Assembly (NCBI RefSeq): GCF_006345805.1
Contig: NW_021825323.1
Location: 1,116,001-1,180,000 of the forward strand
DNA length: 64,000 bases
Source of the DNA: Octopus sinensis
Lineage: Eukaryota
Direction: 5' to 3'
A program made the translations under genes and the position numbers. The notes beneath the pieces were generated by a model. The model was not told the DNA's origin. It ran no database searches and saw only the letters and a list, made by a program, of their open reading frames with translations. This document shows, one piece after another, positions 4,396 through 57,849 of this stretch. Positions within the stretch are counted from its first letter, which is position 1. The number at the start of each line of letters is the position of its first letter.

Positions 4396-5546
4396 ATGGA
4401 TCAAAACAAAAATAACCGGTATCTGATTCATATATATATAAAGCCTAAACTTCTACAAACAAGTCAACACAATAAATGTGTCTAAGATGCAGACGGGACG
4501 AAGGAAAAGAGAACAGAAAGAACGATTCAATGCACGTAGAGATATGTCGGCCGTAAGTGCCTGCCCATCTATACACGGTAACTTACAAAAATCATTTTTT
4601 TCAGAAGATCAAAACCTGCGAAGAACTAAACTCGAAAATTGGATAAAAGATCGCCGTGCTGCACAAAACGCACAACGCAAAAAACCATTCGTTGTACCAG
4701 CCCACAGAGTCGAAAACCCACTGAAATCCACAAATCCAAAAACCTACGACAAAAAACAACCTTTGGTCTCAAAAAATACAGAAACCCTCCAAGCAAGTAC
4801 AATCAGCTCATCCCCATCAATTTAGCCCATTCCAAGATATCCAACATACGTCTTACAAGAGGGGCGGAATTAAGAATGAAGCATTTGGCTGAAGAGAAGG
4901 CCAAAGCAGAGAAATTTATTCGGTTTGAATTGATTTCCTTATTTTTAGAACCACAAAAAAATCGGCTGTAGTTGCCCCACAACGTCCCACCAAAATGCCA
5001 AAGTTCGGCCAAATTAAGAAGGAAAATGATTATCCGAAAAGTATATGTTAAAATGAAATAATATTAGTTCAAGTTGAAGCTGAAATTGAGCAAAAATTGA
5101 TTAATCTTAAACTTGGAGATGCTCCTTTGAAGAAATGCGTAGTTGAGAGTGCAGTTCATTTTTAGTCCCCCATTCCAGCAGTTCTTCCCGAAGAAAGCGA
5201 GTGTGGTCAGTCGGTTGTGGTTCACGACAATGTTTGAGTAATATTGTAATAACTTTAGGTTCATGCTCCATTAAAGTCGACTGAGACTTCTGTGGGGCAT
5301 ACTCCATATAGAAAGTCTCGTCGTTCTATCCGTATTTTACAAAAGTCGATGGATGAGTCCAGTAAAATAAGTCCATTGGTGATACTTCCTGAGATCCCGG
5401 AGAATGACATAACCTCGTTTGAGGAAAAGCAGTCGACGAGGAAATTTATATCTGGTTAGGGTACGAGGACTAATTGGGTAGATATTCTTAATAGTGGAAC
5501 TTTGGGGTCGATTGACGTCTACACCTCTACTCCTGTTGTATTGTGA
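4396..5546 (+). CDS. Uncharacterised multi-exon gene; basic N-terminal half, Ser/Thr/Pro-rich C-terminal half
   Basis: About seven 25-32 nt GT-AG introns join ORF fragments 4478-4825 and 4639-4971 plus downstream exons into one frame ending TGA at 5544-5546. No family recognised. Confidence 0.55.
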
Positions 5547-6377: not shown

Positions 6378-7001
6378 CACTACTTTATTCTGATTAACTT
6401 TTTATTTTAATATCAATTTTTATCAACATCACTTAGGTTGTGTGCCAGAGAACCGCACCTTTACTCTGAGTTCTTTAAAATTATGTCACGGAAAAATCTC
6501 GGAACAAATTTTATTTTTTAAATTAATCATTTATATTCCATTTTAAATCATTGATTACTATCATTTTAGTAGATATTCTAATTTTAACGCAAAGTACTAG
6601 ATTTCACAGAAAGTGGTTGAATCTTAATCATAGCAATATTTTTGGAAGAGTATATATTTAACACGCTTCAGAAACTTTAAAAAATATAAACATGATTGAT
6701 TTAATATCGACAGGTATTTCTAATAAATGTACTGCATTGCTATCTGCTGAATAAATAGTTCGAAAAATCCATAAAACTAAATTTTTGTCTTTTTCTGCAG
6801 AGGTGACTAAAAATCTACATATTTAATTACTTTATTAAGAAAGAAAGTAATTAACTAAGTAATTTTACTAAGTCCAGAGCCTTCGAAGTGACATATTTAA
6901 TTATAATAATAAATACGCAAATATTTGCGGTTTCAATTGACTCAAATACTTTGTTTTTTGCGCATTTAGTTTAATCAGTTATTCCTGTACTTTAATTTGA
7001 G

Positions 7002-9110
7002 ATGATTGAGAGCGGATATGAATTTGCATCAGAAGACTTTGAACTAAAATATCCACAAGTTTTTAGATTTGACTACTCTGACTAGTTAGGTCACAAAAAT
7101 GGTGGAGATATCGAACTTTTAATGGATGCAATCATCTACGCAGGTTTCAGAAAGCCAAAATATGAACTAAAACAAATCATTGCTACTGTATTGAAAAAGA
7201 ATAGCAATTTCCAAATATGTGACTTAGATAAGGTCATACAAGCATAATTTTAGTTCAGATATGTCATTGGCTTTACCTGGATGAACGAAATAGAGCTGTT
7301 TCTTTAAGAGAGAGTAAAGGAATTGAGGCAAAGTTCAAGAAAGAAGACAGTATAAGAGCAATTCATACTTATGAAGAAGCAGAAGTTGTCGGATTTTCGT
7401 CCTGGATAACCAAGTTTGTCAATTTTTAAAAAGTACTCAGATTATTTGCCAATATTCCTAAATGTGAAAAGTATTTGCCTGTCACGAGGGACAATTTATT
7501 TCAGTCACTCGACGACGGCTTTTTACTGTGTTATATGGTTAACGAGGCGGTCCCAAATACCGTCGATGAGAGACTTATAAATGATGGTCAGGACATGTCC
7601 GTTTTTAAAAAATGTGAGAACTGCTCTCTTGCTATAAAATCCGCTGAGTCCGTCGGATGTTGTGTGGTTAATATTGGACCACAGGATATCCTTGACCAGA
7701 ACTCCATAATTATCTTGGGATTGCTGTGGCAGCTCATTAAAGTGGATATTTTTAAATAAAAATTCTAGAAAATGTTAATGTCTAAAATCAACTTGATTGA
7801 GCATCCAAACCTTTTTTTGTTGGTAGAAAACACGGACATGTCGTTGGAAAGTCTGGCTCGTATGAGTCCTGAAAAGCTCATTCTTTTGTGGGTCAACTAT
7901 CAGCTATCACGTTCGAAATGCAAGAAAAGGTTGAATGAATTTCCAAATGATATTATGGTTGAGATTCAATTTATTTTTTATAAGGACGGTGAAATATACG
8001 CTCATTTAATTTATCAAATCGCTCCTAAAGATCCTGAAAATGAGTTTGTCAAAATTTACGGACCAGTCAACCTTGCGTGTACTAAACCCTCTGTAATTCA
8101 TTTTTTTAATTTAAGGAACAATTTTGGGTTGAAAACGCACAAAATATATTGAAGGAGGCCGAAAAAATTGGAGCAAATGTTTTTGTCAAAGCTGAAGATA
8201 TTGTTAGCGGAAACCCAAAATTGAATTATGGATTTTTAGCATATTTGTTCAACCATTTTCCCAACTTGGAAAAAGAAGTGGTTCCAGTAATTAAGGAAAC
8301 GAGAGAAGAAAAGGGTTTTGATTTTTCAGCATTTTTCGTTAGGAATCAGAAACTGGATGAATTCTTTTGATTTAAATATCAATTACCTTTATTTTGATTT
8401 GCAGGACGGACTAGCTCTACTTACTACAATAGATAAAATAAAACCGGGATCAATCAACTGGAAAAAAACAACTACAAAATTTGATGAGAATAAAATGAAG
8501 TTTCAAAAAATCGGTTTTTAGACTTTAATTTAAAATATTTTGTAGAAAATTGTAATTATGTGGTAGACTTGTCCAAATCGATTCTCAATTTGTCTACAGT
8601 AAATATTTCCGGACTTGACATTTACTCTGGTAGTCCAAGACTGACACTTGGTTGTTTCATTCCAATGACTCTATTTAGCGCTGACTTGGCAGATAATGAA
8701 CTACGATCTCCTTGCAATATTGGGAACACTATCCAATAACAATTCTAGACCGTCCGAGTCTGATATTCTTACACTAGTCAACGAGAGAGTAAGTTATAGC
8801 TTGTATATTTTAGTTAAAAACTAAAATAAGTAGTTTCAAATCGACGGAATTTTCAAATTCAAGACCCCTTTTTGATTTGTTCAGAAATGTCAAGGGTAAT
8901 GTTGCAGGTTTGGATTTATTTGACGACGTGGACAGTCCAGATGTATGGAATATTCTGTTTTAATAGTAGGCAAAAATGAAAAATGCACGGCTGATTTTGT
9001 CTCTTTTCAGACAATGTGGAGGCCGTGCATTTATACTGCCTGAAGACATTGTTGAATGCAAGTCTAAATTGTTAATGCTGCTATGTGCCTCAATCATTTC
9101 GTTAAAATAA
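7002..9110 (+). CDS. PLS: Plastin/fimbrin (degenerate EF-hand region plus four CH domains), 11 introns of 23-32 nt
   Basis: CH motifs LFQSLDDGFLLCYMVNEAVPNTVDER, VVNIGPQDI...LGLLWQLIK, PEKLILLWVNYQL, EDIVSGNPKLN, ETREEK..RNWMNS, LQDGLALL, FILPEDIVECKSKL. Confidence 0.93.
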
Positions 9111-12622: not shown

Positions 12623-14733
12623 ATGGTGAAACGATTTTAGAATTTTTGTAGTTTTCAAAATTATTATTCAACACAGGAAAGTCTAAAGAAGCAAAAAAAC
12701 AAATCGAGCTTTCAGTCCAAATTCCACAACTCGAAGATTATATTAGTCAACGAGATTACACTGGTGCAATAACACTTCTTGAGGGACAAAATATAGATTT
12801 GTTGATTTTCTAGAATCAAGAAAATGCCGATTCTGATCCTCAAATCCTTTCATGGATCGGTTATTGCTTATTTCACAACGGAGATTTTGAAAATGCTGCA
12901 AAAGTAAATTTCAGGAGTGTTAAAATCAATTTCTAGACATATAAAAGTATTTTAGAGCAGAATCAGAAACAAAAAAATATATGGATAAACTTAGCTTGTT
13001 GTTATTTCAAATTAAAAATGTACGAAGAATGTTTGGAAGCTTTAAAAAAATGTACTTCATTAATTTTAATCATCGTCAGCTGATAAAAGTGAATTAAAGA
13101 CACGACTACAATTTCAATTAGCTGCAATAAACGCTACACGAGGGTCAAAAGATGTGGTCCCTAAGTTAAGCACGTCAGTAGAGGATCAAATGTCAACGGC
13201 CGCCGTACATTTCTCCCAAGGGCAGTATCAAGAGTCACTCGATATTTACAAAAAGTTACTTCAAGAAAACAGGTAAGTTAAAATAAATTCATTTTTTTAC
13301 AAAAAGTGAGTTTATTGCATTAAACGTTTACGTTGCGCTATGCTATTATAAAATGGATTATCAAGACGTTTCACAAGTTGATTTTTGAGATTTAGTTATG
13401 AAAGGAACGGTTGGGACTGTATTTACAGCATTACCCGAAAAGCTCAATTGCATTGAACCTTCGAGCAGCAAATCGTTACAAAATGTATGGAACAATTGAC
13501 CCCTCAGAAGTTACAAATATTTATTTCTAAAATATTATCAGACTGATGTGTGTGAGTTACAAGAACTTATTTCTGGACAAAGAATGCAAAATCAGGATTT
13601 GACAAAGCACAATATGGAAGAATTTTGACTTTTTAATTTTTAGGTTGTTTTTAAAAACGGGGAAAATGCAATAAAAGTTTTTCCTCAAATAATAGACAAC
13701 GTTGATGAAGCCAAAGTAAATTTAGCTATATACTACTTAAAACACGGTTAGTCGTTTAAAAATACTATTCTTTATTAGATAATTTGGAGTCTGCCGCAGA
13801 AATAACAAAAAACGTGGAAACTACGAATCCGACTGAGCATGTACTCAAAGCAGTTATCAGCGCTTACATTGGACAGGAAAATAATTCTGTTTGTATTTAT
13901 TTTTGACTTTTAAGAGCGATCAAATCAAAAATTCAATTCACAATTATTTATCTGTGGGGAACTCAGCCACCGAATGCGGTGATAAATTTAATTTTATTTA
14001 AAGACACAATTCTAGGAAGACAATGCATGGCTTCCGCATACTTTCTAATGAAGCAATTTGAAGACGTCAGTGTATATCTTAATTCAATCAAAGTACTAAA
14101 ATAAAAATAACTTTCAGACTTATTTTACTAACAATGATATCTTCAATTTTAATTACGGACAGGCAAAAGGGATGCTTGGATCTTTCATTGAAGCAGAAGA
14201 GGTTAAAAATAAAAATGACTATTTTTAGGCATTGAAAAATATAAGAGACAAAAAACTAAAATCAACATTGATTTACAAACTTTGGCTTGCCTATGCATGT
14301 TGAAATCAAAAATAACTTTTTAGATATTAACAACAACAGTGCAAGTCTAGCCTGGGACATTTATCTTAAAATGGAGGCTACGAACGAATCTCTGACATTT
14401 CTCCAGCTTATTGCAAACGAATGTCACAGAGTAAAAACAATTTTTACAGGATTTTAGCTCGGGATTTATTATTACTCGGCAAAAGCATTTCATTTGCTAG
14501 AACGGCTGAATTCTGACGAAGAATACTGGGATGGAAAACGGAGTGCTTGTTTGGGGTTATTCCACATGGTGATCACAAAAAATCAACCAATGTTAAAAAA
14601 CAAAAATATTTTTAGTGAACTTTTGGAAGATATTGAAGAAATTCTTCACGAGAGTCTTAACCCACAGGCTGAATATATTCGAAGGCATATTAAAAAATGG
14701 CGACAGGACCATGTCATGGAAAAAACTAATTAA
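12623..14733 (+). CDS. IFT56: Intraflagellar transport protein 56 (TTC26/DYF-13), 15 introns of 25-34 nt
   Basis: [73 protein letters not shown]. First coding exon is ATG only. Two introns have non-GT donors (12784-12813, 13617-13643). Confidence 0.95.
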
Positions 14734-14801: not shown

Positions 14802-16099
14802 ATGGAACTGAACAACAAAATAGTGCAGCAACTTGAGGCAAAAAATGTTTATTTTAAACTTTTAGTTTTATTTTGGAGATCGAAATTTATACAGAGATAA
14901 ATTCCTTAATTCTCAGATAGAAAAAAATCCCGAAAAATGTATTTCCTTCCATAAATTCATTTACAGGGGTTCCAATCTCAGTCCTTCTAACCTTCAATCG
15001 TCTAAAATCCCTCACAGACAACCCTCAAATAATCGCACAAGCAATCTCTTCCGGGAACTCATCATTGATAGAGATAGATGAACAAGGGGCCAATATCCGC
15101 CGGATCCCCTCCAATGAAATGCCAGAACTGACCCAGGAGTCGGTAGAAGAAGAGAGAAATAGAACTGTCTACATCGTATTTGACCAGAAAGTCAGATTTA
15201 GGATGGATTTCCGCTTGAAACAACGATGGACGATTTGTTAGAATTTATGACCGACTTTGGACCATTTTTGGATTTGAGAATGAAAAAACAGAAGAAAAAA
15301 TTTGTGGTTTTTACAATTTTGGATCTTTAATTGACAGGGTTCGATTTTTTGTGTGTTCAAACAACTCGAAACTGCTCAAAAATTTGTGGATCTACAACAA
15401 GTCCTATTCCGTGATGTTCCGTTGTCCCGGATTTACTTGTTTGTGCAAATTTGTCTATCAGTTTAGGAAAGAATTCTACGAAAAAAAAGAAAATGACAAA
15501 AAGTTGTCAGTTTTGGAGTAAATTGTAGGGAAGATACAAAAAACAAAGAAAAAACGCAGATTGAGGATGCCCAACGTCAGTCAGTTTTATTTGTAGCGGA
15601 AAATCTTCCCGTTGGAGCAAAAGTGAAGGAAATCAGAGCATTTTTCAACTTTCACGTTCCGACGGTTTTTGTCGATCTTTTCGAAGAAAAAAAGGCATTT
15701 TTGACCGATAGACAGAAATAGGGAATTGTAAGAGTTCAAAGTGACCAAACCACGGAATCCGTGATTGAGCAGATTCTCAGAGCAGTGGAGGACAAGTTGG
15801 TGATGGACGAGTGCGATATTTCCCTACGGGTTCCTGAGGGTAGTTGTTTTGATCCGAGTCCTTAGAAAGCGAAGTTGATGGGTTTTGGAGTCGTTATGCC
15901 ACCAATTTGAACAATTTTAATTTAAAAGAGTCCAAAAAACCGAAAAAGGGCAAGTCTAAGAATAACAATGGTCGTTGTAATAAACATAAACTATTTACCG
16001 ATGAGGAGGTTTTTGGGGGGTTTTGTATTTTAGAATGACGAGAGTATTCCCCCTGCTAAAAGGCCGAAGACTCAAGAGGACGACGATTCTACCATTTAG
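14802..16099 (+). CDS. SSB: La/SSB RNA-binding protein (La motif, RRM1, RRM2, C-terminal NLS-like PPAKRPK)
   Basis: KIVQQLE|FYFGDRNLYRDKFL..W|VPISVLLTFNRL, RTVYI|DGFPLETTMDDL, GSIFCVF. Two probable GC-AG introns. Confidence 0.9.
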
Positions 16100-21081: not shown

Positions 21082-21903
<822 letters not shown>

Positions 21904-22243: not shown

Positions 22244-24366
22244 ATGGGTGATAGTGTAGAAATAATTAACGCCAAAAGAGAGTATCGGGGGACTAAGGTA
22301 GTTGTCTCATAAACAATCATACAACCAGCTTGACGGTCAACTGAAACTCAACACTTCAGGCATTTCATTCTCTCAAAAGAGTTCTTCAAGTCCTCTAAAA
22401 ATCGAAAAATCACAAATTTCGTCTGCAGGTCATTTTAAGCAGCCAAAACATTCAAATTGTCTCAGAATCTTAACCAACGACGGAATTGTAGAAAGATTCA
22501 CAAATCTCTCGGAAAATGTGAAAATATTTCAATTAAATCACAGGATTTGAACAAACTTGAAAAATACATCTCAAAACATTACGGAATGAACCTAAATCCA
22601 ATAAAAATGTCAATTTCCGGTTCAAATTGTGGCCAACTTGAATTAGAAGGTAATTTCTAACCAAAATGACCCCAAAAGGGAACTCGTTGTTATTCAAAGT
22701 GGACGGAAACCCTGCTTTTGAAATCCCACTAAGCAATGTGTCTAATTCAAGCCAGTCTCGGTCGGAAGTGGTGACAGAATTCCATCAGAATGAATCCTCG
22801 AATGTCTGTTTGGTCGAAATGAGATTTCACGTCCCTTCGGCTAACGACACCGAGCCAGATGCCGCGGAATCTCTTCATAACTCGATCATGTCCAAAGCCG
22901 ACGTAATAAAAGCGACTGGTGGGGCTATTGCTTCGTTTTCTGAGTTGTACTGTCTTACTCCACGGTGGGACTTCAATTTGACTGTTTTAGAGGTCGATTT
23001 GATGTCAGATTGTTTAATAATTTTCTACAACTCAGAGGAAAGACTGTGGATTATAAAATATCGTATTCTACTATCCTTCGGACATTTTTACTGCCGAATT
23101 TATTGACGAGGAGTGTGTTTTATGTGGTGAGTATATTTAAGTGGATTTTCATCATAGATTGGGATAGATCCTCCAATCAAGCAAGGACAAACTCGCTATC
23201 CTTATTTAGTATTCCAATTCGACCAGGACGATCATTCTGACATTGAATTGACACTCAACGAGTTTTTTTACTATTTTATTGATAGGGAGGTTGAGAATAA
23301 ATTTACAGAATGTGGAATATTTAGGCATATGAGTGGAGAAGTCTTTGATTTGGTTAGTCAGCTGATATCCGTCCTTATGGTATCTCGCCCAATCAAGCCT
23401 GGGACTTTCGAGAGGTGTATTTTGGTCTTATAGTTTAGTAATAACGGAGGAAAGTCGATTGCGTGTTTCTATAAGGCTAACTCGGGGTATTTATTCCCGT
23501 TGGAACGTGGATTTATATTTGTTCATAAACCAACATTTTACTTCCGGTACGAAGAGTTGAGTCACGTGGGATTTGATCGGTCGATTTCCGGGGAGACCAA
23601 ATCATTCGATTTTTCCATCGAGACAAAACAAGGAGGGACGACCTACGTTTTTGCTGGAATGATGAAGTTTTATTTTTGTAACAATTTAGATCTGACTACG
23701 AACATTTGTCGCGGTTTGTGGCCGAAAAGAACCTGTTAGTCCGTGATGCGGAAACCAAGAGGCTTAGGTTTGGTGGTGACTGATAGTTTAGTATGAAAAA
23801 AAACGAGGATCATGGAAATAGTTCTGTCAGTTCTGCGGAGGCTGAGAGTTCAGGGTTGGAGTCGGATGACGAAGGTTGTTCTGTTTGTGATATTCTCAGA
23901 TGTTAACTCGCAAGAGCTGAGTGAAGAGAAGAGCAGTAGTGAGGGCTCAGAATCAATGTCGACGGGGGAATCGTCGACGAATTTGGAGGAAAGTAGAGTC
24001 AGTAAAAGTTCTTCGCACAAAACGTCTGTAAAAAGGAAAAAGAAGTCGTTTGAGGGGGGTGAAAAACGTAAAAAGAAGCCAAGAGATCCAACAATGCCAA
24101 AAAAGCCAATGTCGGCTTATATGTTGTGGTTAAATGAGAATCGTCCTCGAATTAAACGTGAAAATCCGCGAATAGTGTCCGTGGTTGATCTTGTGAGACA
24201 CGCTGCGAGTGTTTGGAACGAACTGAGGGATAAATCGGTGATTATGCGGGTTGTTATGTAATAGAAGTGGGAGAATATGGCGAGAATTGCCAAGGAGGAG
24301 TACGAAAAGGCACTCAAGGATTGGAAAAAGAGGAAGGCTGCTGGGGAATTGGATTTCTCAGATTGA
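22244..24366 (+). CDS. SSRP1: FACT subunit SSRP1 with C-terminal HMG box
   Basis: PAFEIPLSNVS, EMRFHVP, CLTPR|GRFDV, DPPIKQGQTRYP, GYLFPLERGFIFVHKP, PKKPMSAYMLWLNENRP; about ten micro-introns. Confidence 0.95.
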
Positions 24367-24915: not shown

Positions 24916-27900
24916 TCCCCAATAAAACCTCGGCCTTCAGCAGGGATTTCCTAAGCCCATTTTTAACAATCCACATTGGTCAAAAACAACTCAAATAGTC
25001 AGTATATTTGTCAACCTATCTTATCTTTTTCTTTCATTTTATCTCTCCATCTATCATTTCTTTTTCTTTCATTTTATTTGTCCTTTATCTCTTCCATTTC
25101 TTTATTTCATTTCTTTCTGTCCATCTTTCTTTTCTATTCTTTTTTATACCTTTCCATCTTTCTTTTTTATTTCTTTCCTACGATGGCTATTTGCTCTTCG
25201 TGCAAAACTAGCAACGATCGGAAGAAAGGTAGATACTGTTCTGGCTGCAACAGTTTCTTCCACCTTTCGTGTGTTCGACTTTCCAGGCGCGTTTCAGCTT
25301 CTCTCATAACCTGGGACTGCCCTGTTTGTCGTTCTTGCAGGCCGGTCCCGGCCAACTGTCCGCTGGAAATCCCTGCTGAAAGTTCATCTCCGTCAGCCGA
25401 AGATGCTTTAAGATTCATCTATTCTTCTCGCTGTAACCGCCAAATTCCGGCACGGATACCGAAGGCAGCGAGGATTCAAGCTGCTCTCTCTTTGTCCACA
25501 GCTATAAACCGCGCTTTGTCATCTAATGACCAGTCTGACTGGTTACTCCTTTTTGGTTTTGCTGTTTTCGGTATTGGGATCCAACCTCCCGGCCCGACAG
25601 CGAGTCTAAAAAACTTTCTCCCGCATCGATTATTAAACAGCAACTCGCCCTATTCGATCATTGTACTTCTCTGTTTCCCTCCCAGTTCGATTCCCTCCAC
25701 TCTGACTCTCACAAATGTGTCGCCCCTTCTGTGGTTAACACTAAAACTTCCTCCGATTGCATTTACCTCCGTCGTAAGGTGAACAGCAAGCTTTTGGATG
25801 GCGATGTCCGTGGAGCTGTCAGACTTGTTGCCTCCTCTAACCGGCTTTTGTCCCCATCTCCTCCCGTTTTGTCTAATTTGAGATCCAAGCACCCCAGTCT
25901 TCCAAAAAACTCCCGCACCCAACCCGCTATCGATACAACCGCCCTTCCGCAACTGCTGGTTACCGCTTCACAGGTCGAGAAGGCACTGAAAAGTTTTTCC
26001 CCAAGCAGTAGTGGGGGTATAGATGGGCTGAAGCCCGGATACATTAAAGACTTGACTTTACCTCTTACTGCTGAGGCAGGCCTTCTCCTCTTGGAATCTA
26101 TCACCAATCTCTGTAACCGTCTTATCGGTGGTAATTTACCGGATTTTGCCCGAGCGATTTTCTTCTCGGCTAATCTCACTGCTTTAGGTAAAAAAGATAA
26201 CGGGGTCAGGCCGATCGCCGTGGGTAATGTTTTCCGCAGATTGGCCGGAAAGCTCGTTTGCCACGTTGTGATCCCCGAGTTGGTCCCGAAATTTTTGCCA
26301 GTCCAATTGGGCGTCAGTGGAGGGTGTGAATCGGCTGCCCATGCCGTAAGAGAACTTATGGATTCTTCATTGGAATATCTTTTAGTTAAACTTGACATAT
26401 CAAATGCGTTTAACACAGTGAGACGGGATCATTTGCTCGAGACCTGCCTTTCTCTCGCCCCCTCCGCCTATCCTCTGGTCCACCTTTCGTACTCACAACC
26501 CAGCCTCCTCCTGTTTGGCGATTCCTTTATCGTCTCATCGACCGGAGTGCAACAGGGAGATCCCCTGGGGCCTTTTCTATTTGCTATGTGTGTCAACTCC
26601 GTCGCTCATTCTGTCCGCTCTCCGGTAAATATCTGGTACTTGGACGACGCGACGATTTGTGGACCTCCCCGCTCTGTCTTAGACGACCTGCGGAGCATTA
26701 TCCCGGCCCTTTCATCCATCGGTCTGGAGATAAACTCAAGCAAGTCCGAAGTCCTAAATCTGAATATTCCTTCCGATTTTTTTGCCGAAACTCTGGACGC
26801 CCTGGAACCTATTCTAAAAGGCGCGCGGGTATCAGAAACAAAGGACCTTGTAATCCTTGGTTCGCCAATTGGTTACGAGGCCCTCTCACAAACGCTCATC
26901 GCCAAGGCAAGCAATCTGTCAAACATGATCGAACGGCTTTCCCTCATTGATGCCCACGTCGGGTTATTTCTTCTGCGTAACTATTTCTCAACTCCGAGGC
27001 TTTTGTACACCCTAAGGAGTTCTCCTTGTTTTCGCATGCCTAATCTGTTATCCGATATCGATTCTATCTTGAAGTCTGGAGCCGAGTATCTGTGCAATAT
27101 CCATTTCGACGCTCTGGGGTGGCTTCAATCTTCTCTGCCTGTTAATCTTGGGGGGATTGGCCTTCGTTCGCCCGTTTATCTGGCTCTTCCTGCCTTCCTC
27201 TCGTCCCTGGCATCATCCCGTGCCCTCACTGACATCGTTCTCAGAAACCTTCCCGAACGAAAAATGTCAGTTGATCACGTGGCCGCTCTGGACCTTTGGG
27301 ATTCTGCGTATACCAAAAGACCTGCCGACCCATCCGTCCAGGGTCAGTGGGATCCTCTGTCCTGCTTCAGAGTCGCTATTTCTCTGCGTCCGCGTTTGAA
27401 GATCTGCGAAATCCACAAGTGCCGCTGTGGGGCCATGATCGACCAGTACGGTCTACACCCTCTTTCCTGCAGACGCAGTGCTGGGCGGGCACCACGCCAC
27501 ACAGCCTTAAATGACGTTGTCTTGAGGGGTCTCAATGCTGCCGGTATTCCATCAATCCTAGAACCGGCTGGGCTTGCTAGGGGAGACGGAAAAAGACCTG
27601 ACGGTCTATCCACCTTCCCCTTTGAGTTCGGCAAGTCGCTGATTTGGGACGCGACATGTTCAGATACTTTCTCTGAACCTAATCTTCCCTTGTCAGCCGT
27701 CGCAGCCGGTTCGGTGTCCCTTAGAACAGAAAAGCTTAAGATTGCGAAATATAGAGAACTCTCGGAGCGATATCTATTCGCCCCTGTTGCTGTCGAGACT
27801 TCAGGGGTCATTGGGGAAAAGTCTTTGACTTTCCTCTATAAGCTCGGACGTCTGATCTCTCTGAAGAGAAATGACACACGCGAGACGGGCTGGCTCCTTC

Positions 27901-28050
27901 AGAGGATTTCCCTTGCCATCGTACGAGGAAACTGTTTCTCCCTCTACGAAGCGGGGAAGTCCTCTAACTAACTGTAGTTTCATTTTGATTTTTCTGGTTA
28001 AAAAAAACATTAGCAAATTAAAAAAAAAAGAATACTAAATTAAAAAATTA
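24916..28050 (+). mobile_element. Near-full-length CRE-like RLE non-LTR retrotransposon (3135 bp)
   Basis: 8-bp TSD CCGACCCC (24908-24915, 28051-28058), TC-rich 5' UTR, PHD-RT-RLE coding region, A-rich tail. Confidence 0.9.
25183..27971 (+). CDS. PHD finger-reverse transcriptase-RLE polyprotein (one frameshift near 25600-25740, in-frame deletion before the RLE knuckle)
   Basis: C4HC3 PHD motif CSSC..CSGC..FFHLSC..WDCPVC. RT motifs RPIAVGNVFRRL, KLDISNAFN, GVQQGDPLGP, WYLDD. RLE motifs HKCRCG..HPLSC..RH..RPDG..WD..K..KY. Confidence 0.85.
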
Positions 28051-35503: not shown

Positions 35504-38469
35504 CTAATTTAATTCATCTTTTAAGATTTGAGAGAATGAAAATGGTTCGAACTTTATTCCTTCTCCTTTATAGAATTTTGACTGAAATTCTACCCTTTGA
35601 AATATAAATCGTTTTAAAACCAATGAAGTCTAAGAGAGTGCAGAAATGCCGAGAGTCCTTCCATTATTACAAGAATCAAAATTGTAAAAATAGCCCAAGG
35701 AATAAACAAAAAAAACAACACGATGAATCCCCCAGTAGATTGTTTCAGACCAAATCTAAGGACCATATTCCACAAAACTTTTGAAAGCTCTTTAAATAAT
35801 TATAAAATAACGAACAAAACCTTTATGAGCCAAACTTAAAGCCCAGAGTCTTAAATAAGATGCTGTATGAGATATACAACTCAAAAAAAATTCGATAGTA
35901 TGAATTATACGCTCAGTCATCGTAGAATTCACAGGAACCTAAGACAACATTAAAAACGAAACAACGGGTTCTTCATGAAATTCGTCAAGATTAATATTGT
36001 CAAGAGGTTGATGTTTTTTATTTTGGTAATATTGAAGTAATGGAGATGCAAAAAGTAGCCAAGGAAAACACAACAATTGCAAAAATATCAAAAATTGTTG
36101 AATTCCTTTCTGTTTTTATTAAATAAAAATGATAAAACTTGGCCATGATAAAAAATCCAAGAGCTACATGATGTATTTGGTGTATATGGCTCGATATAGT
36201 TAAACATCATCATATTTATAAAATCTTAATTCATACGTAAAATAAAAAATACGAATTAGAATACTGGGGACACATTCAGCACGACTGCCATTGTATGCTA
36301 TCCATTTTGCAAAAATCAGAATCACAAGATAGCCAATTGAGGATAAGAAAAAAATCAACATTGGAAGAAATTCAGTGAATATTCGAACTTTTTCCATAAA
36401 TTTTCTTAAATATAAATTTCAATAAATGTCTTACAGGTGATTAAGTACTTGGAGAAAAATTCCAAACATCATGTGAATTACAGCAATTATTATGGATAGC
36501 TTCATTTTATAGGAATTCATGAAAGTCATTTCATTATTTGCCAAAGTCCATATCTAAAAATAAAAATAGCATAAAACTGGATCGATGCCATAAATATACG
36601 GATTACCACTATAGTCTGATTTGACTCCGGTTGTGAACGATCCTTGATTGAGAAATGTAAGATCAGAATAATTTTTATAATTTTTAAACGAAATTCTATT
36701 ATTAAGCAATTTATAGAAAAACCTGTGATATTGTGTAGACCAGGACGATCCGAATATATTAATTGATTTCGAAAAAATGTCGTTATAAAGAAATCCAGTA
36801 TAAATAGAAAAAATACCCATCAATAAAATCATATAACGCCCATCAAAGATAAGAGATATAATCTAATCATATTATTTCATTGTTTATTAACATCATCCTT
36901 ATTCTTCAGTTTGGATATACTATCTTCGAAAATTATGATCAAAAAAGCGGCTATGAGTAATATTATTCCATGTCCAGCATCTCCAAACATGAGAGCAAAG
37001 ATATAAGGGAATGTAATAATTGTAAAAATTGCTTATATAATTATTTTATATATGATACCCGGATTAACTTCCATATAATTTCCAATTCCATAAACGTCAA
37101 TTATGTTTTGAAACGCTCTTGTAAATTTATTTGTTGGGTTATATGTCGGATGAGGCAACGATGTAAAATGTCGTTCAAGAAAAGACGAAGTGCTCCAGCC
37201 GCTCAATTTCTACAATGTTTTCAATATTTAAAAATTACATTTGACTCTTCAAGAACCAGTTTGACCTTTTTAACATCTTCTAGAGGACACCAACATTCAC
37301 CAATAAGCAAAGATTTTGACGAATCAGAATTAAATAGATTTAAGGTAAAATAAATTGCTTTCAATCTTTTAACTTCAAATTTCCAAGCCTTTAAATTGGA
37401 AGAAATTGAATTTAATAAAGTTCTTTTGTAATTTATTGTTTGTTCAATTATCTATAAATAAAATCAATCATTAAACTATTTCTAATTGGTAAAGATTTTC
37501 ATTTACTTCTTGCGATAATGTAGCTCGACTTTCAGAATCACGTGGACAATCAAATAAATCACTTTTTAGTCTGAAAATATTTTATTTGAAATTAATACGA
37601 TAAACAGATTTGGTTTATTTTCGGCAAAAGTCGATCACCGCGGCGAATAATCAAAAAATATCTTTCTGCAAATCTTTCTTAAAATTAAGTAGTTTGATTA
37701 CGTTTTCGCTGTAAAACATGTGTTTGTCGACGTTAAAATTCTTAAAAATTATGTTTCCGTGGCAAAAACGCCAAAGAATTCGATGTAAAATAGGTATTTT
37801 TTCCGAATCAATTATGCCAGTAATGTAGCTTTACTAAAAAGTATATTAAAATAAACTTAAAGCTGTCAAAATTTGAATTTAGAAGAGGTTCATTAGAATC
37901 AGCACATGACCTATTAGAGAAACTATTTTGTTGCTATCAATATTATATCACACATCATTAAACGAAATTTGCAGTTAGTTTGTGTGTTTTCTGCAAAATC
38001 TCGTTAATTTTTAAAAGTCGGCTGTAGCTATTTTGTGATTCTGTCAAATTTTGATTGACATTAACAATTTTTTGATAAACATCGTTGACTTTTTCCTAAA
38101 AAATGTAAATTATAATCAGAATACTTCTAAAAGTATTAAATCAGTTTGTTTTGGAAGAATACAGTCGTCAAAAGTATTACTAATACAAATATTTTCATCA
38201 TTTGAGCATTCTTCTATATAAACTGAATTGATTAGATATAAAAAAAACTTATCTTCTTTTCGAGTTCATCACAAAATCTGACCTCTTTGATGAATTTGGA
38301 ATGAAAACAGTTAGAACCTATCTACATTATTCATAAAGTCTGAATAAAAATTTACATCTCTAAATTCAACAATCCCAATGTCTCCGAATTCTGCCAAACA
38401 GTAAAATGCCGCTTCTTGTTGAATATAGAGATGAAATAATCCCATTTCTTTACTTCTTAATGTCGACAT
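35504..38469 (-). CDS. ATP6V0A: V-type H+-ATPase V0 subunit a
   Basis: [25 protein letters not shown]|[63 protein letters not shown]|VEFQSKFY; many 24-34 nt introns. Confidence 0.95.
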
Positions 38470-40607: not shown

Positions 40608-40680
40608 TACCCCGACTGGGAGTCGAACCCAGAACCTTTCGCGTGTAAAGCGAACGTGATAACCGCTACACCATCGAGGC
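40608..40680 (-). tRNA. tRNA-Val(TAC)
   Basis: GCCTCGA/TCGGGGT acceptor stem, TTCGC-TT TAC AC-GCGAA anticodon arm, GGTTCGACTCC T-arm, downstream T-rich terminator; 73 nt. Confidence 0.95.
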
Positions 40681-41888: not shown

Positions 41889-44048
41889 CAGTGGTTCTCA
41901 AACTGGGGTACGCGTACCCCTAGGGGTACGCGAAATTCTGTAGGGGGTACGCGAAAATTTTTTGAAAATCTATTTAATTTTCGTTTCACATAAAAAAGTT
42001 ATTAATTCTAATTATAATAAAAATCATAATTAAATTAAATAATTAATAATAAAATAAATCTCCACGCTACTAGTTTTTCTTATGAGTTTACCTGTTAACA
42101 AGATTCGAAAATACAACGATAGTTATCTCAACTATGGATTTTATTTTGTGATTAAAAACGGTGTGCCACATCCGCAGTGTATTATTTGCCAAAAGATTCT
42201 TTGCCCTGAATCCATGAAACCTTCATTACTTTCTCGGCATCAAGTTTCTAATCATTTCGAAACTATCGGAAAACCAAATGACTTTTTTAAGAACAAAAAA
42301 GATAATATTCGGAAAATAGACGATTCTTTCAATTTTGACATTAATTTTTTACTATCAAAACTCTCTTACATGATTTCATATCGGATCGCAAAAGCCAAAA
42401 AACCACATACAATTGCCGAGAATCTTATTATACCGTGCATTAAGGACATGTTTGAATGTTTCCCTGGCAATAAATTGGAGCATATTGTTCGAAAAATTCC
42501 ATGTTCAAATGATACCGTCAATAGAAGAATACGAGATCTATCCGAAAACATAAAAGAACAAGTTATTTTCTGGTTAATTATTATTAGGTCATTACTGAAA
42601 TAAAAAGTGCTGCCTTTAAAAAATTTTCAATTCAATTGGATGAATCAACAGATGTAGCAAATTGCTCTCAGTTACTCGTTTATGTGCGATATATTTATAT
42701 GGAAAATATTAAGGAAGAATTTTTGTTCAACTATTCCTTACCTTTAAACACAAAAGGTTCTGATATTTTCGATGCAGTTAATTGTTTTTTTGAAACAGAA
42801 GGTACATTTTTGATTTTTTACTTATGATAGGCCTATTGTGGCAAAATCTTAGTGCATGCACCACAGATGGAGCACCAGCTATGCTTGGATGTAACTCTGG
42901 TTTCCGAGGTAGAGTACAATCTGTCAATCCAAATGTAAAACATCTTCACTGTATGTTGCATCGTTATGTTCTTGCTGTGAAGACAATGCCTCTTGAACTT
43001 AAAAATGTTCTTGACGATGTTATTAAAATTGTCAATCATATCAAAAAAAGTCCTTTAAATTCGCGAATTTTTTATTCAATTTGTGAAGAATTTGGTTCAG
43101 ATGAGAAGGTTTTACTATATCACACAGAAGTTCGATGGTTATCCAAAGGAAATGTTCTTTCCAGAGTGCACAGTTTGAAGAATGAAATTTATGAATATTT
43201 TCTTCGCGAAAATACAAATTTATATTTATCAAAGTTATCAAATATGTATTGGGGTGTAATGCTATCTTATTTAACGGACATTTTTTCGCGAATTAATGCT
43301 TTGAATTTATCGGTACAAACTAAGGGAGTTACCATTGTTGACTTTTTAGAAAAAACAAGGTTTTTTACGAAATAATGCAATATTGTAGGTCTTTTCGTAT
43401 GAAGCTCCAACTGTGGATAGATAATACAACAAATTCTAATTTTACTATGTTTGATAAGTTGAATGAAAACATTTTCCATCTAAAATTAAATGAAATAGAA
43501 AATTTAAAACATCAAATAACTTCCCATTTACTTGGATTGAAGAATGAAATTGAAAAATATATACCTGAAATTAATGAAGTAGATCTTAAGTTTTTTGTCA
43601 ATCCTTTTTCCGTAAAAGTTAATGTTTTGCCTTCAAATATTCAAGAAGTTATTGAATTAATAAATTCTTACGAGTCAAAAATCTTATTTGAATCTGCACC
43701 ATTAATTGAATTTTGGTGTAAAATGACATCAAAATATCACAATATTGGATTTTATATAATCGATTTTTTGCTTTTGTTTCCGACTACATATCTCTGCGAA
43801 CAAGGATTTTCATCGTTGTTTAATTTAAAATCAGTTCATCGTGCGAGGCTGAATGTTGTTCATGATATTCGGGTGTGTCTTTCGTCAAAGGATCCAGAAA
43901 TCGATAGATTAGTGATTGATAAACAACACCATCCATCTCATTAATTAAATATTTTTTTTCCTTAATTTTTTAAAAATCAATAAGGGGTACGCGAAAAATT
44001 ATTTAGATGGCAAGGGGTACACAAGGAAAAAAAGTTTGAGAACCACTG
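41889..44048 (+). mobile_element. Complete hAT (Charlie/Buster/ZBED8-like) transposon, 2160 bp
   Basis: Perfect 16-bp TIRs CAGTGGTTCTCAAACT and subterminal GGGGTACGCG repeats at both ends. Confidence 0.93.
42082..43944 (+). CDS. hAT transposase, 592 aa after removing three introns
   Basis: Exons 42082-42561, 42588-42801, 42831-43359 and 43389-43944 sum to 1779 nt in one frame. BED-like CIICQK..H, DESTD, TTDGAP, HC..H, EVRWLS, TTYLCEQGFS. Confidence 0.9.
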
Positions 44049-45199
44049 CTCTAGAAGATAATATTTTCAGTACATGTCCACAATTTTTGAAAATCTACTA
44101 CGAATTTAGAAAAAACCTATCAGGAGAACTGAAAAAAAAACCAATTCGGTGAGAAAATTACTGATTACTTTTAATAGTATTTTTTGTTGGATTTATTAAA
44201 ATTTTTAAATTTTATTAAGAAAGGACTATGTTAGAATTTTTATTAATATTAAATAATTTTAATTTATAGTCTAAAATGCAATAAAAATCTATTGAGGAGA
44301 AAATAAAAGCAAAAAATCTTTACCCTCGCATTTTGGGGCACCCCCGCTTTTTGGGGCACTATGATAAAAATGCTGCCCCAAACCGGGGTCGTACTGTAAT
44401 GCTATATAAAGACATAAACATTGGTGAGCAATTTTTTTTGACGACCACTGTATAACTGATTTCAAAACAGGCGGGAGAGTTTTCGAAACCAATACTTCAC
44501 GATGTAAAAAACAATGTGTAGATAGTATTTGATCATTCTATGCTTTTAGTACAGAAACCTGAATTTAATTATATAAAAAACAATATACAAGTCCATTAAA
44601 TCTTCCAGATAGTGCTTCATCTGTGCTGTAAATATCAATTGCACAATTTTAGGAAAACTTATTTTATCTTTCAGAAGTCGAATCTTTTTAAAATTAAATT
44701 TTGAAATCCGTGAGGCTGAAAGGGCGTCCTAAACTGCGTAGTCTTTTATGTTATTTACGTCTGTTTTTTTCTCCTTTATAATGTTTATAACTTTAGAATA
44801 AAAAAACGGTCGAGAGCACAACGGGCAACGCAACCGTAATAAAAAAATATGTTTCCGAAATCTCTTGATTGCGATTCCGTAGACATCAAAAAGACCAGAC
44901 CATAAGGATCGAAACCCTTTTTGGTACGGCATTTTGGTTCAAAATTAAATGTATTTAAATAAAATACTTTATAATGTCATATTAGTACATCTTTATATTT
45001 TGGGTTCTCAACAGAAAATTTAAATGTAATAACACGATTCTATTTATATCGACTCAATAAATAATACATATTTAAATTTATTTAAAAATCAACTTATTTT
45101 TTTGTCGACTTACACACTATTAAAGAATGAATATTTATATATTATAATTAATTTTTATACAAAATTATGAATAACTAATTTTTTTTAGAGACATGTATT

Positions 45200-47919
45200 A
45201 TGGAGTCCTGTCTTGTTGAGTCCTTTTGTTCAGTTCTTGGAAACGCAGGTTACTTTTTCAAATATTTTCTAGAATTATTAAAAATTATTGATGAAAATGA
45301 TTCAGAATTCCCCATCGACAAGTTAGTTAGTAGCGAAAATATCTGCCAATTTTTGGAAGTTTATACGAAATCTCCAAATTTTAATCAACTCACGAATATT
45401 GGGAAATTTATATCAATTTTTATTCCAACTTTGAAATTAATTACAAACAACAACCTAAATATATTTCCATTAGTCGATTACATTTCAAAAAATATATTTT
45501 CCGAATCATTATTTTGCCCAATCTGCACAATCTTCACTGTAACTAATTCTTTTAAATTACTTGATAAGTCTTATGTTGATATAATTTATAAAAAGTAATA
45601 TTTTAAATACTTTTTTAGTTATTTTCAAAATGTTTTGACTGCCCTGCATTCTGCCATGACTGTCCCCTGCCAAATAGTGTGTGCCTCACAGATTTGTCTA
45701 GCTCGGAAAGATGATATAAAAGCTATTCTTAGCCAAACAGTGTCTGATCTTATACTTCCTTCACATTATCGTCGACATGTATATAAAGTAATATTGAATC
45801 CATCATCTCAATCTGTTTCTTTTCGACGTTTTTGTTCTCAATGTTTTGCAACGTTAGTTTCTCAACCAAATGGACTAAGGGAACTCACTACTGAGTTGTG
45901 TTCTGAAAGTAAACATATTTTATGATATTTTTTTAGAATTACCGGTTTCTGTCGATCTTCAACAAAATGCAGTGGCACAATTATTGGTTTATTGCCCACT
46001 TACTCGTTCTTTCATTCCCAAATATTTGAATTGTATGATAAAACAAGTATGATCTGGAAAATGTTATTTTTAGATATTTCTTGAGAAGAGTGAATCGTGG
46101 CCAGGTGTATGGTTGGTTATATTGTCGTTCATTGCTTCTAAATATACTGATTTGTTCGAAGAATGTTTGGATCAAATAATTCTCCCCAATTTGAGGGATC
46201 AAAATATTTTGGATCATTTGCTCAAAGTTCATTAAAAATAAAACTTTTATTAGATTGAGTCTGATTTTCGACTCACTCAAGCAGTTAGAAGATATTTGAC
46301 TGACAGAAAAAGACTTTCTAATCTCTTTAAGTTATATGTTGATTTATATCCTCGAGTAGAACTCACAGGGTTTGTTTGATTGGGTAATATTAGTCGTGTT
46401 GTTGGACAACTCATTTCTCGTTGTCTTGATGGAAACAGTTCAGCCGGGGATATTCTTTTTGAATGTTTAGTTCAAAACTGTCAATCTGACGGAAACGTGG
46501 TTTCTTGTGTTATTTCGATAATTGATTCTGTTTCTGATAGTGGGAATGTCGTGTGCTCTCTATTGCAGTTGATTTTTCAGGTTAGATTAGTTTTTGTCGA
46601 CTTTATAGACTTATAATCGAGCAATCTCTGAGCAGGATATTCCTGAATACGTAATTTGTCTTGTCGAATATCTTCCACATATAATTGAGCATTATTTGCC
46701 GACCCTGTTTACTCAGGACTCTACAAAAATAGCTGAATTTGTGAAAGTAATTGATATAATCACGTAAAGATGTCATTAAATGATTTATGCTGTAATCTCC
46801 CGTCTCCCGACGAAACAGAATTGGGAGAAATTAGACAATCTACTGTGAATATTACTCTAAATTTAATGCTCACACTGCTTTTCGGATTTGAGAACGTTTT
46901 TTGTAGTTTGTAAATTTTTTAGTTGGATTGGAAACAGTTTGATGAGTTGATTGTGCAATTGACTGATTTGGGAAATTTGTGGAAGTCCTACTCGTTTGAT
47001 GTCTACGAATTATCCACTCAAATAACCACACTTATTACTTCTCGTGGAAAAGAAGGATTTGATAAATTACTGTCGGGATGTGGGATTGTAGAGTCGAATA
47101 AGAGTTGTTTTGAATTGGCATATGAGAATGCTTCTTGTGTGGGGTGTATAGTGACGAAAGGGGAGGGAATTATTAGTCTAACTAGATTGATCTCAGCTAA
47201 TGATTCTGAAACTATGAAAAACGATAAAAAGATTTTACGTCTATTTATTGACTGTTTGAGTGATGATGACAGTTATATATATTTGTCTGCTATTAAAGGT
47301 ATTGTGAATACTTATTAAAGGAATTGTCGAGTTGTGTGATCGCTTTCATGATCATGTCGTCCCTCTTTTGGTTTCGGAGTTTGCTGGATTAAATGTTCAT
47401 ATGTCCTCTCTCGAGGTACGACTGGAGATTGGTGAAATTATTGTCAAAATTTGTCGCAGATTAGGTCAGTTAGAATAAAAGTTTAGGTTTAGGTTCCCTC
47501 TTGCCTATGTATAAAAATAAACTTGCAAATCTACTTCTTTTGGCGTGTAGGGATGTGAATGATCTTATTCGTGCAAGTGCTTTGTCTGCTTTTGGGGAGT
47601 TCTGCAAATGTGCACGATTTACAGTGGGCACATATTTGGTAGAGGTTAGAAGTGTCTGGAATAATGGCAGATTATTGAATTGATTCGATCTGGACTGAGG
47701 GACTCTTCTAAGGAAGTTAAAAGAGCTTCTATTAATTTTCTCCTGCTTTTATTGCAGGGAATTGAGAGAAATGAATTGCTTTATTTATTGAAGGACTCTT
47801 TGTCTGAGATTGCCAAGATTATTCGTGTAGCCAGTCAAGATTATAGCGACGAGGGTGTCCAAGTACTTGCAGTGCTTGTCGTAGAAGAGTTGGAAAAACT
47901 TTTATTTTCGAATTTATAA
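45200..47919 (+). CDS. TANGO6: TANGO6/Rtp1 ARM-repeat protein
   Basis: C-terminal DCLSDDDSYIYLSAIKG, RLEIGE..RLG, DLIRASALSAFGEFC, EVKRAS..LLLQG; about 11 micro-introns. Start codon uncertain. Confidence 0.78.
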
Positions 47920-51240: not shown

Positions 51241-51874
51241 CACGAAAATAAAAAAATTGCTTAAATTAAATGAATATTTGGACACTCATAAAATTTGGAG
51301 TGGTCATTTGGGTATTTTTAGTTATCAGTTTAGTAAGATTAAAAAATTACACCATTAAGGACAAATTGTAATTATTTAAAAATTAAAAAAATACTTACAA
51401 ACTTTAATGACATAAAAATCATGATTATTAAAAATTATCGACAAATAAATCAAGCTAAAACTGCCATGAAAAACCCAGTTTGAGAAACAACAAAAAATGA
51501 ATTTGTTAAAAACCTTGTCCGAGTCGCGAGGGTGTAGGTTTTTGATTATATTCAAATAATAAATACTTATTGAATGCTTTTGTATTTTTCAAAGTGGCTG
51601 AAAATATTCCATAAATGTGAAAATCAATTAAAAATGTCAAATCAATTTACTTAAATAAATTATTGTTCAAATAAAATTAAAAATGATATACTAAGATTCA
51701 TTCAACACAATTAACTTAAAGCTAAGTAAAATTATTTTTAGCAAATTTTTTTAATTTTAAATTTCTTAATATTATTTAAAAATATTAATTTTCTTGTTGT
51801 TTTTCTGGGTTGATCTCGAATATAGCTGTACTTAACAAATATATATTTTTATCTAAATTATCATATTTAAGGAT

Positions 51875-52540
51875 ATGAAAACTAACGAAAATTCAAATCC
51901 CCGACAATATCGCCTCGTTCTACTAGGAAATACAGCAGTGGGGAAATCCAGTCTTGTCATACGTTTCGTAAAAGGTCAGTTTCTACAATTCCAGGAACCC
52001 ACGATCGGCGGTTTTTTCAAATTTATCCATTAATTAGCCTCTTTTTTGACTCAATCTGTGACCACACAGGACACAAATGTGAAATTTGAAATCTGGGACA
52101 CAGCAGGACAAGAACGGTACCGCAGTCTGGCCCCAATGTACTACCGGGGTGCCCAGGCTGCGGTCGTCGTTTATGACGTCACCTGCAACGACAGTTTTTT
52201 AAAGGCCAAAGAATGGATAGGCGAATTAAGAAGGCACGCCTCTGATAAAATAATTGTGTCCCTGGTTGGGAATAAAGTCGATTTGGCTACTGAAAGTCGA
52301 CAAGTGGACTCTGAGACTGCAGCTGAGTATGCCAAAACAGAAGGACTACTTTTTTCGGAGGCCTCTGCCAAAACTGCCTTCAACGTTAATGAAATTTTTA
52401 TCAATCTCGGTTAGTTTTTTTAAATTATTTAAGCTGCGGCACTCTTAAAAGTGGCACAAAAGACTTCCTCTGATGCCTCTAGAGGCGACTCTCGTACTTT
52501 AAATATTGACAATTCCAAACCCACAAAACGATGCTGCTGA
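51875..52540 (+). CDS. RAB5: Rab5-family GTPase
   Basis: [27 protein letters not shown]|[40 protein letters not shown]-terminal CC. Confidence 0.93.
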
Positions 52541-52598
52541 ACTAATTTATTTTGATATTTATTTTCGGAAATAATTTTAATAAAAACTGAAACACAAT

Positions 52599-54282: not shown

Positions 54283-54560
54283 TAGACAGAATGAAGCACA
54301 CAAAAACACACACAAATAATAAATTTTATTTATATCATATTTAAAATAAACTGAATATAGTTATATGCTATTAAATTTTGTATAATAAATAATTCATTTT
54401 GACAGAAATATTAATTAATTAAGAATCTTTAAATTTTATATGTTTTATGACTTTAACAATTTTCAAAAACAGTCTGTAATAATTTTAATTTTGTTTTTTA
54501 TTAAATTAAACTATATTTAAATTATTAACAAATTTTTGAAATAAAATATGAACAACATTA

Positions 54561-57770: not shown

Positions 57771-57849
57771 TTACCTCCGAATTATTTCTGAGAAATAATT
57801 GATTAATGATTTTTCAATTTTTTAGAAAAATTAATAATCAATCACAACG

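Follow-up and report, generated by a model that had tools for sequence, protein, structure and literature searches.

Introns that begin with GA in place of GT are already known in a few animals. They are used in Oikopleura dioica and Eurytemora affinis (Frey & Pucker 2020) and in the human FGFR genes (PMC7072748), and in one of the first two species GA-AG makes up 3.2% of the supported splice-site combinations; variant small nuclear RNAs (snRNAs) have been proposed as the explanation in Eurytemora (PMC7072748). A far broader loosening is described for Fritillaria borealis, in which 95% of the introns are off-rule, the 3′ ends are variable, U2AF is duplicated and the N6-methyladenosine (m6A) modification of snRNAs is altered (PMC13326754). 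Extremely short introns form a second line of background: the median intron of Dicyema is 27 bp (PMC6543705), no non-myxozoan animal other than D. japonicum has been reported to have introns of less than 30 bp, and in that species the splice-site motifs are reduced and A residues weakly conserved (PMC13644364); among animals a 27-nt mode is on record in dicyemids and myxobolid myxozoans alone (PMC13644364; PMC6543705). Here we describe a 27-nucleotide (nt) segment, positions 13617-13643, in a 64,000-nt stretch of an assembly deposited as Octopus sinensis (NCBI RefSeq GCF_006345805.1, contig NW_021825323.1, positions 1,116,001 to 1,180,000 of the forward strand; this whole stretch is referred to below as the window). 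The segment interrupts the gene for IFT56 (TTC26), and with a probability that we put at roughly 0.7 it is a genuine U2-type spliceosomal mini-intron with a GA 5′ splice site, most likely a rare addition to the GA-AG introns already known. Its excision from the RNA is what we infer from the DNA sequence.

At its ends the segment resembles the introns of Oikopleura and Eurytemora in its predicted U2 type, its compact animal genome and its combination of a GA donor with an AG acceptor, with G at −1 and an A following the GA (PMC7072748); the donors of those two species have a strongly conserved upstream AG, whereas the window donor is preceded by TG (ATG/GAA, the slash marking the exon boundary). 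With human FGFR1-3, whose GA-AG introns have a 'dead-end' GA 5′ splice site (cited in PMC7072748), it would have in common a GA donor that is conserved and functional in a gene of otherwise GT-AG introns. The FGFR donor is reported to depend on a canonical site 6 nt upstream (PMC7072748), whereas there is no GT within 61 nt upstream of the window donor. The gene and the parts of it that surround the segment are laid out as follows.

12623..14733, + strand: IFT56/TTC26 coding region of ~552 codons, split into 17 exons by 16 introns (24-34 nt each)
12623 and 14731-14733, + strand: ATG start codon and TAA stop codon of IFT56
13542..13616, + strand: IFT56 exon 8, upstream of the GA donor (from gene model and alignment)
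13617..13643, + strand: GA-AG intron, IFT56 intron 8, phase 0, 27 nt, GAAGAATTTTGACTTTTTAATTTTTAG
13626..13630, + strand: TGACT motif, an alternative branch candidate (A at 13628), on a weak basis
13635..13643, + strand: 3′ end of the intron, TTTAATTTTTAG, with AA at −9/−8 (candidate branch adenosines), a T run and the TTTTAG acceptor
13644..13746, + strand: IFT56 exon 9, ending with 1 nt of a split codon (from gene model and alignment)

The gene model was assembled manually from the three-frame translation. Its spliced product matches annotated IFT56 proteins of many animals in BLASTP searches (E down to 2e-168, 45-50% identity, 93-99% query coverage) and contains TPR/ANAPC3 Pfam domains in the expected TPR architecture, so that by full-length similarity and domain architecture the gene is IFT56/TTC26. 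Throughout its ~552 codons there is neither a frameshift nor an exonic stop, and 14 of the 16 introns are GT-AG, the two exceptions being 12784-12813 (GG) and 13617-13643 (GA).

Direct reading of the sequence places ...CACAATATG upstream of the GA-AG segment and GTTGTTTTT downstream. The segment holds no GT, and the frame of the flanking exons would run into TGA at 13626-13628 and TAG at 13641-13643; the earlier note on this DNA, made from the sequence alone, gave the segment and its coordinates exactly and reported the absence of GT and the in-frame TGA, to which the TAG can now be added. G is retained at +1 but +2 is A, so the 5′ GU usual for U2-type introns is not present. Excision joins DLTKHNM to VVFKNG, and in an alignment of the window product with 11 animal IFT56 proteins (from cnidarians, a placozoan, spiralians, arthropods, a priapulid and chordates) this junction is gap-free against HN(L/M)VVF, the residues H258, N259, V261, V262 and F263 around it being invariant; the collinearity that the note claimed for KHNM/VVFKNG is thus borne out. 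These features bear on whether the 27 nt could instead be kept in the mRNA and translated by stop readthrough, recoding or bypass. Nothing specific speaks for this beyond a length that is a multiple of three; both the TGA and the TAG would need recoding in a gene that itself ends at a TAA stop, nine residues would be inserted in an invariant motif, and the segment has every feature of the local introns and its position is that of an ancestral intron (below), and we consider the chance of its being right to be vanishingly small.

Three 27-nt frames would yield an identical mRNA, namely GG..TA (13616-13642), GA..AG (13617-13643) and AA..GG (13618-13644), and among them only GA..AG keeps both G at +1 and AG at the 3′ end. 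The closest upstream GT, at 13555, is 62 nt from the GA donor and its use would remove 20 residues including invariant ones. A different choice of boundary is offered by the GAAGAA tandem, which places an in-frame GA 3 nt downstream and would give a 24-nt GA-AG intron (13620-13643) with an additional Glu, and an unconstrained dynamic programme favoured on coding score alone a 21-nt TT-AG intron (13623-13643) that adds Glu-Glu. In either case residues would be added inside HN(L/M)VVF, between M and V, where all 11 homologs are gap-free, and the intron would be shifted off a conserved phase-0 position; moreover the TT donor lacks G at +1, and lengths of 21 and 24 nt are rarer than 27. We therefore regard these shorter introns as very improbable.

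The strongest new evidence for the GA-AG reading is the position of the intron in orthologous genes. For Trichoplax sp. H2 and Lottia gigantea we retrieved the IFT56 locus and placed each protein exactly on its own DNA. In each of them the codon boundary in question, between HNL and VVF, carries a phase-0 GT-AG intron: in Trichoplax the sequence reads CAC AAT TTG/GTAAGCTT..121 nt..TTTTAAAG/GTT GTC and in Lottia CAC AAT TTG/GTTAGTTT..206 nt..ATTTCTAG/GTT GTA, for which the window counterpart is CAC AAT ATG/GAAGAATT..27 nt..ATTTTTAG/GTT GTT. All 16 intron positions of the window gene are common to Trichoplax and/or Lottia. Because the position is shared with these two animals, the segment is an ancient, miniaturised intron, which excludes both an insertion and the decay of an exon, and the position predates the split of placozoans and bilaterians. 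The earlier note's identification of a GA-AG micro-intron in IFT56 thereby gains independent footing.

Two further introns of the gene are of note. One of 26 nt (12626-12651, + strand) follows directly after the ATG, and Trichoplax likewise has an intron right after its start codon. The last intron (14592-14615, + strand), at a position common to Trichoplax and Lottia, is 24 nt long, a multiple of three without an in-frame stop, and if it were retained it would add 8 residues without truncating the protein.

To what extent is the segment typical of its surroundings? A coding-chain dynamic programme trained on the window, restricted to GT-AG introns of 20-40 nt, yielded 13 strong coding chains with 111 GT-AG introns. 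Their modal length is 27 nt (22 of 111), as the note had proposed for the GA-AG segment. Beyond GT the donor consensus is essentially nil, with GTTTTT the top hexamer; the top acceptor hexamer is TTTTAG (15 of 111), the acceptor found here. Upstream of the acceptor the frequency of A is highest at −8 (0.46) and −7 (0.40), and positions −6 to −3 are T-rich, a pattern in line with the weakly conserved A residues of D. japonicum (PMC13644364); the AA at −9/−8 of the segment puts an A on the enriched position −8. The TGACT that the note described as a branch-like motif is present at 13626-13630, but too few introns share it for a general signal: it occurs in 5 of the 111 (TGAC in 7). The AT content of the segment is 81% as compared with a mean of 76% for the 111 introns, and if the donor dinucleotide is ignored it scores 11.5 bits, within the range covered by the gene's 14 GT-AG introns (3.6-14.3). 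The 27-mer is single-copy in the window when up to 3 mismatches are allowed, and on this ground an origin from a repeat or transposon such as that seen in Fritillaria was rejected.

Two other introns with non-GT donors lie nearby, one of them in the same gene as the note had claimed.

12784..12813, + strand: GG-AG intron, IFT56 intron 2, phase 0, 30 nt, GGACAAAATATAGATTTGTTGATTTTCTAG, after the E of AITLLE
15695..15721, + strand: probable GC-AG intron of a La-protein gene, 27 nt, junction EEKK/GIVRV, 2 kb from the GA intron

The GG-AG intron opens with GGACAAAAT, closes with TTCTAG and contains an in-frame TAG, and no GT donor could be used in its place without losing the invariant residues G39, A40, T42 and L44. 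In-frame alternative donors near 12784 are GA (33 nt, at 12781), CA (27 nt, at 12787), AA (24 nt, at 12790), AT (21 nt, at 12793) and GA (18 nt, at 12796). In Trichoplax and in Lottia a GT-AG intron falls exactly behind TLLE, and because both outgroups split the gene right after this E the 5′ boundary is fixed. The intron differs from GTACAAAAT by one substitution.

In the La gene (~14840-16090) the GT-only coding chain is broken near 15700. Alignment of its RRM_3 region with database proteins shows FVDLFEEKK/GIVRV matching the conserved ...EG.VRF strand; an alignment with PDB entries extended over the La motif and RRM1 only and did not cover the junction. A 27-nt GC-AG intron at 15695-15721 is probably to be preferred on these sequences over the alternatives of 51 nt (GT-AG) or 30 nt (GA-AG).

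We then re-ran the census on 11 gene spans, each time permitting one of five additional donor sets besides GT. Under every set the programme used these three non-GT sites, and the G-first sets recovered 12784-12813 (GG) and 13617-13643 (GA) exactly. The window tally is thus ~111 GT, 1 GA, 1 GG and 1 GC, or ~2.6% non-GT, all G-first and all AG-ended. Several other candidates were discarded. Extra non-GT picks appeared with control, non-G-first sets only and were treated as artefacts; they lie inside a 72-nt intron of CFIm25, which exceeds the length limit, and at two other places (AG at 5439-5459, 21 nt; TG at 13667-13695, 29 nt). Anomalies in the gene for the V-ATPase a subunit proved to be GT-AG introns, 34 and 31 nt long, and an apparent non-GT gap in CFIm25/NUDT21 resolved to the 72-nt GT-AG intron. 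An ab initio census with any donor at low penalty returned ~190 non-GT 'introns' on both strands, chained across the whole window, and was rejected as noise; GA accounted for ~7% of its picks by hand count, close to the frequency of the GA dinucleotide.

The CFIm25/NUDT21 gene (Pfam NUDIX_2, E = 2e-70) is itself of some note, as this intron (21526-21597, − strand; 72 nt, ~90% AT) is the longest well-supported one seen in the window.

All three non-GT donors have the form G/GNA (ATG/GAA, GAG/GGA and AAG/GCA), and the second and third of them do carry the upstream AG; the shared context resembles the AG/GAA described for the GA donors of Eurytemora and Oikopleura (PMC7072748). The combination of G at −1 with A at +3 occurs in 11 of the 111 GT introns, so that its appearance at all three sites has a post hoc probability of about (0.099)^3, or ~0.001. 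Such a context would be expected if there were selection for the remaining pairing positions, and not from random errors or neutral decay. This bears on a second alternative, in which the GA is an error of base-calling or assembly and the true donor is GTAGAA (by substitution) or GTAAGA (by a dropped T). A single-base change is indeed sufficient to give GT, and insertion of a T yields GTAAGA, a classical animal donor. Against this, errors would have to have struck two donor T's in a space of 840 nt (12785, T to G; 13618, T to A or a deletion), neither site lies in a homopolymer, and random errors would fall in a G/GNA context only ~10% of the time each. The strong chains have no frameshift or stop breaks besides the three non-GT sites, for which reason the local assembly looks accurate. 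An error is accordingly quite improbable. The note had held that a second non-GT donor in one gene argues against both sequencing error and pseudogene decay; the two departures do speak against random base-call error, but taken alone they are compatible with relaxed selection or early decay.

The main rival is that the GA is real and the intron is unspliced or poorly spliced, the gene being an IFT56 hypomorph, a null allele or a young pseudogene. Several observations weigh against the splicing of 13617-13643 and some of them favor this rival directly. In classical experiments on yeast and mammals a change of the donor from GU to GA permits the first step of splicing but blocks the second. The non-GT donors are concentrated, with 2 among the 16 introns of IFT56 (12784 and 13617) as compared with only one, GC, in the ~95 elsewhere, a distribution that fits relaxed selection too. 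The protein is unusually divergent, being 46-48% identical to homologs that are 77% identical among themselves (45-48% over the whole 12-sequence alignment), and it agrees at 63% of the alignment columns in which those homologs do not vary, as would also be the case if selection on the gene were relaxed. The G/GNA test was devised after the data had been seen and has n = 3 sites. In the protein database the closest IFT56 relatives are 45-50% identical; a 119-residue query spanning the junction gave one match, at 38%, and a La query gave matches of 28-46% identity. Finally, the heterozygosity of D. japonicum is 1.24% (PMC6736024), such that in a similar genome a defective haplotype could have been assembled.

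On the other side, the ~552-codon frame is intact and the other 14 introns are perfect GT-AG introns at conserved positions. A rough estimate of our own sets ~64 splice-critical bases against ~250 coding sites at which a change would be disabling, and gives P ~0.04 for two splice lesions and no coding lesions under neutral decay. Both donors keep G at +1 and the uncommon G/GNA context, as does the unrelated GC-AG intron of the La gene. IFT56 is moreover a conserved component of the cilium-building machinery and the animal from which it comes is presumably ciliated. On balance a splicing lesion seems unlikely, though it is the rival that we take most seriously.

From the shared position it follows that an old GT-AG intron was miniaturised, and that its donor later changed from T to A at +2 or lost the T of GTAAGA. 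If 13617-13643 is spliced, the major spliceosome would remove it by means of G at +1, the G at −1, the A at +3 and the fixed short distance to the branch and acceptor region. In transcripts that keep the intron, translation would stop early at the in-frame TGA and TAG, such that unspliced RNA would give no full-length protein. Donors of the G-non-T type, at ~2-3% of the introns of the window, may then reflect a modest lineage-wide relaxation at +2 and not the oddity of a single site. Other means of handling the donor were considered. A U12-type intron is ruled out, the donor GAAGAATT not being RTATCCTT and there being no TCCTT in the 27 nt; RTATCCTT is not enriched in the window (7 matches, 5.8 expected). 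RNA editing to create a GU is rejected by reasoning, since adenosine-to-inosine change at +2 would be read as G and there is no C to edit.

The window does contain a gene for U11 snRNA (44805-44922, − strand; Rfam RF00548, 63.2 bits against a gathering score of 39), with the 5′ end AAAAAGGG and the Sm-like sequence AUAUUUUUU, and it seems that the minor spliceosome has been kept in a genome of ~27-nt introns. No U1 or U6 gene was found in the window.

Comparison with the other known systems sets this departure apart in degree. With Fritillaria the window would share a lineage-specific loosening of GT/AG in a compact animal genome that is processed by the major spliceosome (PMC13326754), but in the window ~97% of the introns keep GT-AG, every acceptor is AG and the variation is confined to +2. 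From the introns of Oikopleura and Eurytemora, which are not ~27 nt, those of the window differ also in phylum, and the window frequency comes from 114 introns and from sequence alone. GC-AG introns, the usual minor class among those of U2 type, are alike in keeping G at +1 and an AG acceptor with a base other than U at +2. To our knowledge GC donors are tolerated in all eukaryotes at ~1%, and GA and GG are normally far rarer.

As to the organism, the window most likely comes from an animal with ~27-nt introns and almost no donor consensus past the first two bases, and this animal is probably a dicyemid. The proteins of the window that were searched have no close relative in the protein database; the best matches are animal proteins, none above 50% identity. 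A dicyemid is favored because the ~27-nt introns, the GC content and the presence of reverse-transcriptase elements fit D. japonicum, and because an intact intraflagellar-transport gene suits a ciliated dicyemid better than it does the myxozoans, which are without cilia. The window has 34.5% GC and the D. japonicum genome 36.7%, with 49% repeats (PMC6736024); reduced splice-site motifs, an A upstream of the AG and a conserved exon-intron structure are further points of likeness to Dicyema. Term searches within three Dicyema papers (PMC6543705, PMC6736024 and PMC13644364) found no mention of non-GT donors, and a full-text literature search found no paper that pairs Dicyema or other ultra-short-intron animals with them.

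Were the intron to be spliced, a spliceosome working on ~27-nt introns could use a donor without U at +2, which is a rare exception in most animals, and the GA, GG and GC introns together suggest that a few percent of the introns of this genome break the GT rule. Gene predictors that permit only GT-AG would truncate or mis-splice such genes (a GT-only model of IFT56 loses ~40 residues, including the invariant HN(L/M)VVF), and gene counts and lists of 'missing' genes in reduced parasites may be affected. The locus would also provide a dated example of an ancient GT-AG position at which the donor drifted and the intron was kept. A more general 'GN-AG rule' can be put forward for this ~27-nt-intron lineage, probably the dicyemids, with GA, GG and GC donors at ~2-3%, −1 G and +3 A compensating, and the donor set by G at +1 and the short distance in place of extended U1 pairing; we offer it tentatively, as an idea that is possible but that we are inclined to doubt. 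If true, it would bring to three the number of animal lineages in which GA/GG donors reach the percent level, this one being the first spiralian-grade parasite among them, and it would tie the relaxation of splice sites to extreme intron shortening.

The remainder of the window is AT-rich and intron-dense, and in its midst are two intronless, LINE-like (long interspersed nuclear element) reverse-transcriptase open reading frames (25731-27971, + strand; 56442-58617, − strand) that are GC-rich (~46-50%). The one on the + strand encodes 746 amino acids and matches Pfam RVT_1. A transposase-like chain (42079-43859, + strand) has no Pfam match. The other features are listed below; coordinates of protein genes are those of the predicted coding chains.

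3-874, − strand: TPR protein
6999-9089, + strand: plastin/fimbrin-like protein with CH domains
22439-24354, + strand: SSRP1
35557-38454, − strand: V-ATPase subunit a, with 22 predicted introns of which at least 1 is spurious
40608-40680, − strand: tRNA-Val (anticodon TAC)
45185-47904, + strand: RTP1_C1/HEAT protein
51872-52513, + strand: Rab5-like GTPase
52587-54342, − strand: RNA-exonuclease-like protein with a Pfam EloA-BP1 match

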